Below, one piece after another: positions 5,915 to 64,000 of a DNA stretch of 64,000 nt. Every line of letters starts with the position of its first letter. Within the stretch, counting starts at the first letter, position 1. The stretch is from sequence record LC765218.1; one strand, given 5' to 3'. The translations under genes and the position numbers were made by a program. The notes below the pieces were generated by a model. That model was not told the DNA's origin, did not search any database, and saw only the letters and a list, made by a program, of their open reading frames with translations.

Positions 5915-6427
5915 TTAAGAGAGACCAAGTGCGGCTTCTTCCTCACGTGCTTTCTTTTCAGCAACCGCGCGCATGCGTTCGTTGAACTCTTCAGATGTCT
6001 CGTTAATGACACCAATTTCACCTTCGCCGGCGGCGTGTTCAAACTCACCAAGATCTTCATTATCGATATCTGGTTCTGAACCGCGGTTATCTTCACCAGG
6101 TACGGCAACGAACGGGTTCTTGTTCTTAGCTTGCCTAATGAACTCTGCCATCGATTCAACCAGATCACGTGCAGACTTATTACCTTCTGCTTCGATCTGT
6201 GTACGACGATTCTGGATAGTCGTGCGATCCATCGAGTCCATAACTTTCAACATCGAATCAATAGATTCTTTGTCGGTTGGAATAGTACCATCCACACGGG
6301 AGGTCATTACACCATGAAGAATCCGATGCTTAACGTTTTGTGTAAGTTTTAGCTGGTCTTCATAAGAAAGCTCAGAGTACAAAACCTCTGGTTCTGTCGG
6401 AATAAATTCCGGGATCGGAGTTTCCAT
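5915..6427 (-). CDS. hypothetical protein with acidic C-terminus
   Basis: 170 aa, GAGGT RBS on the minus strand. Confidence 0.8.
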   Translation of the reverse strand: METPIPEFIPTEPEVLYSELSYEDQLKLTQNVKHRILHGVMTSRVDGTIPTDKESIDSMLKVMDSMDRTTIQNRRTQIEAEGNKSARDLVESMAEFIRQAKNKNPFVAVPGEDNRGSEPDIDNEDLGEFEHAAGEGEIGVINETSEEFNERMRAVAEKKAREEEAALGLS

Positions 6428-6502
6428 TTTACTACCTCACTGTTGAGAAATACTCAACGGAATAACAATATGCCATAAAATGCGGATTAGGGAGTTTTCT
6501 AT

Positions 6503-7045
6503 ATGATTAATACGCTACGCCGCTGGTTACGGGTGTTCCAGCCAGTATCCAAAAAACAACTGTATTCAGCACTGCTTGATCAGTTTGAAGACGAGGGCGT
6601 GCGTCGTGATAATTATCCCATCATGCTTGCAGAATTATGGAATAGAATCGATGTCAAAGACTTCGGTGAAATTTCACCTAGAGACATGATGGCAGTAAAC
6701 ATGGAGCTGCGACATACTAACGTAACTTATCTGATTGAACAGATGAATGTCATTAACACAATGGTATCCACCGGCGATCAAGCAGCTTTAGAACAAATTA
6801 GTAAGAATGAATTCACCCAATTCAGTAGAGTTAACTTAGATGAATACTTTGCTGATGCAAGAGGTTATTCTGTAGATATAGTCGACTCTTTAGAAAAGCT
6901 TAAGACGTATCTTGATAAGCATGCAATGATTCTTGAAACACAAACCGCGAGCTTCTATAGAAGAGTTTTAGGAAGAGTGTATCATGATATCCTTGTACTT
7001 ACCCAAACGCTTGTTGATACCATGAAGGAAGAAACTATGAAATAA
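6503..7045 (+). CDS. hypothetical protein
   Basis: 180 aa, GGGAG RBS. Confidence 0.8.
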   Translation: MINTLRRWLRVFQPVSKKQLYSALLDQFEDEGVRRDNYPIMLAELWNRIDVKDFGEISPRDMMAVNMELRHTNVTYLIEQMNVINTMVSTGDQAALEQISKNEFTQFSRVNLDEYFADARGYSVDIVDSLEKLKTYLDKHAMILETQTASFYRRVLGRVYHDILVLTQTLVDTMKEETMK

Positions 7046-62428: not shown

Positions 62429-62439
62429 TGGTACATTTG

Positions 62440-62480
62440 GCCCTCCCTTCGGGGAGGGCTATATGTCGTTTTTTATTTTA
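62440..62480 (+). terminator. terminator
   Basis: GCCCTCCC-TTCG-GGGAGGGC-TATATGT followed by T tract. Confidence 0.8.
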
Positions 62481-62505
62481 CTTACGCTAAAAAATATCTC
62501 AGATC

Positions 62506-62550: not shown

Positions 62551-63066
62551 ATGTCTTTTATATCTGCGGAATCTTTCACTAATTGGAAGTTCTATAAGGA
62601 ATTGAGAAAACAGCATCGCAAACATTTACAACTGTGTCGCCACCGAGCAATTTTGTTCTTTGGCGATGTAATAGGTAGACCCAGGTTGCATATTGATGGT
62701 ATTTTATTCAAAGATCTATTTGTCATTCCAGATGTCTTCGTTGTCAGTGGTGGTGACGAGGATTCATTCGATCATCGACTGGAAGAACTGGACAAAGAAA
62801 TATGTGTGATCATGAACAATGTCTTCGTACAGCTTGAAGCGGAAGCTATCAACGATTACTACAAAAGTTCTTCACGAGGTGTTACTATTCGTCCTAATGG
62901 AGAAACTCCAGTAAAAGACGATGTTGTTATTGGTGAAGGGAAAATTTATATCTGTGATGGCAATGGCAATCTAAACTTACTTTCGAACGAACCTGGTGTA
63001 GTCTATGCATCGACAACTCCATGGTATCTTAAGCCATGGAATTTCATAAAGAACATGTTCCGTTGA
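62551..63066 (+). CDS. hypothetical protein
   Basis: Start refined to 62551 (GAGGA RBS). Confidence 0.75.
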   Translation: MSFISAESFTNWKFYKELRKQHRKHLQLCRHRAILFFGDVIGRPRLHIDGILFKDLFVIPDVFVVSGGDEDSFDHRLEELDKEICVIMNNVFVQLEAEAINDYYKSSSRGVTIRPNGETPVKDDVVIGEGKIYICDGNGNLNLLSNEPGVVYASTTPWYLKPWNFIKNMFR

Positions 63067-63073
63067 GGTAATC

Positions 63074-63505
63074 ATGTATCCATTCCAGAAACCCAATGAG
63101 CTGCAACCACGTCATGAACTTGATGGTGATGTTATTACCAATCGTTGGGTTCCGGGTGTAGCACCGCGTACTTTAAAAGAACTCAAAGAAGTACATGCTA
63201 ACCTTCCCAAAGGTGATCTTAGTGCTCTCGATGAATTCAGCCGATCGGTTAGTCAATCCATCGATGCTTATCTCATTGAAGATAGCGATGAGTCTAATGC
63301 AGCTGTAAAGAAAATAATCTCGGAATCCAAGACATGGAACATTAGTGTCTATACGGGTACCCAGATCCATCACATACTCACGGCCAATCCCAAAATGGCA
63401 AATGGTCCTGAAGATGTAGGTTACTTCAAGAAATACCGTGATCACATGTCTTCTCTCAATAAAGAAAAGAAACTGATCACTTCTATCACTGAACGATTCC
63501 TTTAA
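63074..63505 (+). CDS. hypothetical protein
   Basis: 143 aa, GAGGT RBS. Confidence 0.75.
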   Translation: MYPFQKPNELQPRHELDGDVITNRWVPGVAPRTLKELKEVHANLPKGDLSALDEFSRSVSQSIDAYLIEDSDESNAAVKKIISESKTWNISVYTGTQIHHILTANPKMANGPEDVGYFKKYRDHMSSLNKEKKLITSITERFL

Positions 63506-63519
63506 TCTGGAGACTCAAA

Positions 63520-64000
63520 ATGATCAAACTCACTTCTGCACTGAATCAAAAACTGGTTGAAGCATACTACAACTGGAATGCAGATAACAACATGTACCGC
63601 TTCGACTGTGTTATCGATGTAGGTTATCTGGCAGAACCGCTTCGTAAAATCATGATGCGTTCGAAAGATTTCAATGCCACTAATGGTACCATCGTTCTCA
63701 ATCTGTCGGTAAATGCGTGCCGCCACATTGATTATTCGGGTGATTGCTTCTATGGTGAAATTGCTTTCTCGGGTATGCCTACTCGTTTGCATCTGCCATG
63801 GCATTCTTTCATTGGTGTGAATGTGCAGATCTCTGAGAATGCAAGTGTGTTCTCTTCGTTCCCTAATGTCGATCGGATTTTGTTTGATGCCGAGAATCCG
63901 ACGTATGTTCATCCCTTCCGCGATATTGCTAATGGTGCGCCTGGTACCGTCAGCATTGATATCGTAGATGTAATGGCATGGCTGGCAGAGAAGGGAATCA
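63520..64000 (+). CDS. sspB: SspB-like ClpXP adaptor homolog, 3' end outside window (not in ORF track)
   Basis: GGAG RBS; LVEAYYNWNADN and NGTIVLNLS..A...I....G.IAFSGMPTRLHLPW match the recalled SspB pattern LLRAFYEWLLDN and DGQIVLNIA..A...L....ARFGGIPRQVSVPL. Confidence 0.75.
   Translation, partial: MIKLTSALNQKLVEAYYNWNADNNMYRFDCVIDVGYLAEPLRKIMMRSKDFNATNGTIVLNLSVNACRHIDYSGDCFYGEIAFSGMPTRLHLPWHSFIGVNVQISENASVFSSFPNVDRILFDAENPTYVHPFRDIANGAPGTVSIDIVDVMAWLAEKGI

Follow-up and report, generated by a model that had tools for sequence, protein, structure and literature searches.

An SspB-like protein with a ClpX-docking-type tail in the Pseudomonas jumbo phage BRkr

The jumbo phage BRkr (genome 306 kb), which infects Pseudomonas aeruginosa, encodes a protein, RVBP21_1410, that is a diverged homologue of SspB and belongs to the long-form jumbo-phage family of phiKZ gp232 and PhiPA3 gp270. 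The protein fits the pattern of this family, namely an SspB-like N-terminal domain combined with a tail of the form P-x-L-T-[VL]-I-[KQ]-G-G-K, and is filed here as diverged SspB-like rather than as a canonical SspB because its score against the corresponding Pfam family falls below the cut-off. For this gene, annotated in LC765218.1 as encoding a hypothetical protein, we propose the annotation "SspB-like protein with ClpX-docking-type tail". SspB-like genes are a known kind in phages, with annotations in GenBank and mentions in published work; in the literature searched, we found no description of the fixed two-part tail module or of the non-homologous middle modules.

The gene, its conservation and its surroundings

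The window, i.e., the entire stretch of 64,000 nucleotides analyzed here, corresponds to positions 62001-126000 of LC765218.1 and is 100% identical to Pseudomonas phage BRkr. Direct reading of the sequence shows that an ATG at position 63520 on the plus strand starts a frame that stays open through 63999 (160 codons, open at the 3' end). An earlier note on this DNA had pointed to an open reading frame of at least 160 codons at the window edge, missed by the program-made track and preceded by a GGAG ribosome-binding site; all of this proved correct, as did the peptide quoted for the frame. The complete gene is annotated in the source record (798 nt, 265 aa) and ends at record position 126317, equivalent to window position 64317 (L001 coordinates 6001-6798), so that it is missing from the track only because the window cuts it. 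The features relevant to the analysis, in window coordinates, are as follows.

62438-62461, plus strand: GC-rich hairpin followed by a T-run, terminator-like, closing the preceding unit; an AT-rich stretch comes after it
62551-63066, plus strand: RVBP21_1390, first gene of an apparent four-gene unit; no Pfam or PHROG match
63074-63505, plus strand: RVBP21_1400, directly upstream at a gap of 14 nt; no Pfam or PHROG match
63509-63512, plus strand: GGAG ribosome-binding site with a 7-nt spacer to the ATG, read directly from the sequence
63520-64000, plus strand: RVBP21_1410, codons 1-160 plus one base; SspB-like gene of 265 codons in full
63535-63897, plus strand: predicted SspB-fold substrate-binding domain, residues 6-126 (VIA-align, Foldseek, phmmer, hhalign)
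63952-64000, plus strand: start of a predicted three-helix module, residues 145-210, mostly past the window (AF2 model)

Eight closely related phages possess the gene, with protein identity of 97.5-100% over the first 160 residues, and the full frame of 265 codons is present in eight related phages; at a greater distance, PhiPA3 gp270 shares 46% identity with the BRkr protein. A scan of viral_contigs for further relatives found none. Comparison with the copy from phage HPP-Temi yields 86 nucleotide differences and 12 amino acid differences, with a dN/dS of 0.036, half of the amino acid changes falling into the linker described below and none into the tail module. This ratio indicates strong purifying selection and shows that RVBP21_1410 is no chance open reading frame. 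The notion of a chance frame or a decaying gene, for which the only support is the lack of a stop codon within the window, can be virtually dismissed: it is refuted by the intact gene in the eight relatives, by the low dN/dS and by a confident fold model, and products of orthologous genes are known from mass spectrometry.

From the arrangement of the sequence, RVBP21_1410 seems to occupy third place in a set of four genes between two hairpin terminators, the second of which, also GC-rich, lies past the window (L001 7080-7099); the stop codon of RVBP21_1400 occupies 63503-63505. Pfam and PHROG searches revealed no recognizable function for the neighboring genes. No infection RNA-seq run covers this stretch, and what the three RNA-type runs contain is limited to short parts of the neighbors. 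Within 62438-62500, the strong hairpin has a 10-bp stem with 7 GC pairs and a T-run, and the AT-rich stretch after it contains TACTTA. The middle-type promoter of phiKZ has been described as a TACT motif with an A-rich repeat before it, and the 62438-62500 region may be where the unit of four genes around RVBP21_1410 begins. Two neighbors bear on annotation in their own right. The HPP-Temi homologue of RVBP21_1390 (L104:211-744) is annotated as a "tail protein", a label that looks unsupported, the BRkr copy having no Pfam or PHROG match. Two genes downstream and past the window, RVBP21_1430 (L001:7131-7886) is the syntenic counterpart of PhiPA3 gp271, for which a note in GenBank gives similarity to the macro domain; RVBP21_1430 itself has no Pfam match, and its PHROG matches are to a family of unknown function and to a family labeled "tail protein".

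The SspB-fold domain and the phage-specific modules

Multiple sequence and structure comparisons support the suggestion of the earlier note that the frame encodes an SspB-like protein. In a phmmer search of the PDB, the ten best matches were all SspB (best E-value 4.6e-5; residues 10-120 covered), and hhalign comparison of a four-member family profile with E. coli SspB gave a probability of 93% (E-value 3.5e-7). PHROG 8945, labeled "SspB-like", matches the BRkr protein with an E-value of 6e-5, and phrog_25970, the family of phiKZ gp232, matches residues 1-121 with an E-value of 8.3e-10. The Pfam SspB family (PF04386) is recovered independently by 13 of the 21 family members drawn from a search of 1.84 billion representatives (E-value <= 0.01; best 6.2e-10); the BRkr protein itself reaches 16-17 bits against a gathering score of 27 (E-value 0.006-0.01). 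Apart from this score, all of the comparisons point to homology. The fragments of E. coli SspB that the earlier note had quoted match the actual sequence.

An AlphaFold model built from an alignment of 41 sequences has a mean pLDDT of 84, with values above 90 over residues 1-135. In a Foldseek search with this model, the top 13 matches (E-value <= 0.001) were all SspB, with E-values from 1.9e-7 to 3.6e-6 and target TM scores of 0.69-0.80, the targets including both crystal and cryo-EM structures. VIA-align likewise superimposed the model on SspB structures with Z-scores of 12.1 and 11.4 (rmsd 2.1-2.3 Å); the best of these, with an rmsd of 2.1 Å, takes in the E. coli SspB of 8ET3, which shows the protein in the ClpXP delivery complex, over its full 105 residues. 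By these comparisons, residues 6-126 have a genuine SspB fold. The model also has a helix at residues 8-22, a possible counterpart of the N-terminal helix through which SspB forms homodimers.

When aligned together with SspB from gamma-proteobacteria (80 sequences), the BRkr protein keeps the bacterial-invariant A15, W19, D22, I58, L60, N61, A66, G85, and P93, including the I-x-L-N positions, and differs at six other positions that are invariant in bacterial SspB, namely the equivalents of E. coli P11, R15, P42, F72, R96, and G99. The bacterial proteins (E. coli b3228; Pseudomonas SspB; PF04386) thus have in common with the BRkr protein the fold, these kept residues and a disordered tether that leads to a C-terminal G-[RK]-P-x-L-x-V-[VI]-K peptide. 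In contrast to them, the BRkr protein is phage-encoded, deviates at the six invariant positions, scores below the Pfam cut-off and is longer by 100-130 residues, with a three-helix module and a PLLDFG motif added; furthermore, it carries GGKK after the docking motif, and T where SspB has R or K.

The three-helix module (helices at 148-157, 165-177, and 180-210; pLDDT 75-95 in the AF2 model) is phage-specific. It has no Pfam, PHROG or usable ESM Atlas match and cannot be aligned to the central part of phiKZ gp232, and a wide structural search returned only heterogeneous helical matches with Z-scores of at most 5.5, under the level that the tool treats as meaningful in the case of helical folds. 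Residues 211-265 are predicted to be coil (pLDDT 54-74 in the same model), and the linker varies in sequence and length across the family, being about 32 residues shorter in member P0004. Such variation in length is as expected of a tether, and we predict from the model a flexible, disordered linker that follows the helical module and leads to the docking peptide.

The C-terminal module and its distribution among phages

The last approximately 35 residues of the BRkr protein consist of PLLDFG, about 17 variable residues, and S-R-Y-K-G-K-P-K-L-T-V-I-K-G-G-K-K. The fetched sequences of SspB end with G-R-P-A-L-R-V-V-K in E. coli and with G-R-P-S-L-K-V-V-K in 13 Pseudomonas species; against these ends, the phage protein can be seen to carry the docking-peptide pattern G-[RK]-P-x-L-x-V-[VI]-K, in the form G-K-P-K-L-T-V-I-K, followed by four further residues, GGKK. 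The earlier note had raised the prospect of an XB-like tail downstream of the window, and the motif is indeed there; however, it does not lie at the extreme C-terminus, and one of its basic residues is replaced by T. L161 and V164 of E. coli SspB are the key docking residues, and we take the L and I of the phage tail to be their equivalents. In UmuD, a similar motif is used internally, and if this holds, the internal position of the motif in the BRkr tail is not disqualifying.

The strict tail pattern has no match in the 128,000 residues of the six-frame translation of the window, and shuffling the protein 200,000 times produced it in 5 cases, so that, by these sequence statistics, its resemblance to the docking pattern is unlikely to be due to chance. 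Within the 306-kb BRkr genome, the tail pattern and PLLDFG are each unique to RVBP21_1410. A role of the tail as a general phage tag was considered and rejected, the pattern being found in this one BRkr gene only. A complex prediction for tail residues 221-265 with two copies of residues 1-62 of P. aeruginosa ClpX scored 0.28 (mark 0.34) and bears on docking neither way.

Across the family, the tail is the best-conserved part: BRkr and phiKZ gp232 are 53% identical over the last 38 residues and 24% over the N-terminal domain. The tail is near-invariant among 35 long-form members, and 35 of 41 family members, BRkr included, end in GG[KR]. PLLDFG, which is absent from bacterial SspB and from the short phage forms, occupies residues 232-237 of the BRkr protein (L001:6694-6711, beyond the window), 30 residues before the end; in 25 long-form members, the spacing from PLLDF to the GGK end is 26-37 residues with a mode of 30, for total protein lengths that range from 196 to 327. 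A sub-group of the long form (P0037 and P0039-P0043, from contigs of ~310 kb) has W for L in the tail core (P-x-G-W-x-V-I-Q-G-G-K-A) without PLLDFG, and this may be a variant docking module.

A tblastn search with E. coli SspB detected homologues in 78 phage records, mostly from jumbo phages; many nucleus-forming jumbo phages that infect Pseudomonas, Erwinia, Ralstonia, and Xanthomonas have such genes. SspB is already named in the annotation of PhiPA3 gp270 (where the GenBank note refers to similarity to SspB), Churi gp079, and RAY gp039. PhiPA3 gp270, phiKZ gp232 (phrog_25970), and Churi gp079 share with the BRkr protein the long-form architecture, the tail ending in GGKK and the syntenic position; the three carry SspB notes or names in GenBank, whereas the BRkr copy is labeled hypothetical. 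Between phiKZ gp232 and the BRkr protein, only the N-terminal domain and the last 38 residues can be aligned, the middle modules being unrelated in sequence, and gp232 has MVEDFN in place of PLLDFG. RAY gp039 of an Erwinia phage (phrog_8945) and pf16 gp18 of a Pseudomonas phage, the latter discussed as a phage SspB in 2017 (PMC5587285), are also phage-encoded SspB-fold proteins; however, they are only 128-150 aa long, end as bacterial SspB does (...TLRVVK and ...TLTVVK), and lack the helical module, PLLDFG and the GGK extension, all three of which are present in BRkr. Given that these short forms end exactly like their bacterial counterparts, the step from canonical SspB to the long form is a gradual one.

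Possible action on host ClpXP

No ClpX zinc-binding domain and no ClpP are encoded by BRkr; the idea that the phage brings its own Clp partner was therefore rejected, and any such partner would have to be that of the host. We favor, with moderate confidence, the reading that the BRkr protein docks on host ClpX via its tail and acts as an SspB-like ClpXP adaptor. Under this scheme, docking would take place in the cytoplasm of the infected P. aeruginosa cell, between the tail and the N-terminal zinc-binding domain of ClpX. The SspB-like body, perhaps together with the helical module, would hold a cargo and in this way deliver it to ClpXP, and the docked protein would also be in competition with host SspB and further clients for the ClpX N-domain. 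The cargo is probably something other than the standard ssrA tag, given the changes at several positions that do not vary among bacterial SspB proteins. In line with this reading, the orthologues RAY gp039 and phiKZ gp232 are both cytoplasmic; against it, the main text of the phiKZ co-fractionation paper (PMC10449902) names no ClpX partner for gp232. The earlier note had suggested that an early phage adaptor could redirect host ClpXP to defence proteins or antitoxins, or act as a dominant negative, and these are hypothetical roles. In the literature searched, we found no experimental demonstration of a phage-encoded ClpXP adaptor and no binding or degradation experiment on a phage SspB-like protein. 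Adaptor-like engagement of a host Clp unfoldase by a phage protein has been studied experimentally for Gp53 of Bacillus phage SPO1, a modulator of ClpCP; Gp53, however, is an unrelated protein whose target, ClpC, is a different unfoldase and whose host is Gram-positive, and its likeness to the BRkr protein is functional only.

The same tail evidence would apply equally to a decoy or inhibitor, in which the tail occupies the ClpX N-domain and the body perhaps sequesters tagged proteins without delivering any, such that host SspB and N-domain-dependent degradation are blocked and phage proteins are shielded from ClpXP. Such tight, non-productive binding could be served by GGKK, by PLLDFG at its fixed spacing and by the long helical module, and SPO1 Gp53, which competes with host adaptors on ClpCP, offers a precedent. 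SspB and RssB share one hydrophobic patch on the ClpX N-domain and, since this patch is common to host adaptors and substrates, competition is to be expected whether the phage protein is an adaptor or a blocker. A pure blocker, however, needs only the tail, whereas in the BRkr protein the body, too, is subject to strong purifying selection and retains residues that are invariant in SspB; on these sequence grounds, we argue that the body matters beyond the tail alone. For this reason, we prefer the adaptor over the pure blocker, and consider the decoy, as the main rival, unlikely while giving it some weight.

A different possibility is that the SspB fold has become a scaffold for another partner, such that the tail and PLLDFG bind a host machine other than ClpX or a phage protein, the resemblance to XB having been inherited and then repurposed. 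GGKK, which makes the position of the motif internal rather than C-terminal, the T at its middle position and the PLLDFG motif would all be compatible with a partner other than ClpX or in addition to it, and PLLDFG and the helical module have no counterpart in SspB. Moreover, phiKZ gp232, which was detected by co-fractionation mass spectrometry, co-eluted with shell-enriched fractions (PMC10449902). However, in the same study the gp232-mNeonGreen fusion gave a diffuse signal outside the shell (PMC10449902), BRkr has no Clp partner of its own, and the short proteins RAY gp039 and pf16 gp18 end exactly as bacterial SspB, with a continuous series leading from them to the long form. We therefore regard a non-ClpX partner as improbable.

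Going further than the adaptor reading itself, the long form could be more than an extended SspB: PLLDFG, the XB-like peptide and GGK could grip host ClpX or ClpXP at two sites in the manner of a clamp, with the helical module bringing new cargo, so that jumbo phages would re-aim ClpXP at host proteins; this is a speculative proposal that we rate as quite improbable in its full form. Were it true, nucleus-forming jumbo phages would redirect the main cytoplasmic protease of the host, early in infection, at targets such as defense factors, in an area, phage control of host proteolysis, that has been little explored. The question of ClpX docking spans the whole phage family, including phages considered for therapy, and the tail is the most constrained part of the protein.

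With respect to timing, the earlier note had called the adaptor early; this is supported through a single orthologue, Churi gp079 (named stringent starvation protein B), whose presence at 15 min post infection is documented by 8 peptides with 45% coverage (PMC11849849, S3 Table), and the source for the expression class is the Churi proteomics. As read from the table columns, phiKZ gene 232 has 22 transposon insertion sites in one data set and 43 in another, and it is located in a region described as largely non-essential (PMC12676376); these 22 to 43 insertions indicate that the orthologue is dispensable in the laboratory. Host SspB (Q9HVV8, 135 aa) appears in a list of host proteins of the Churi study (PMC11849849, S4 Table).
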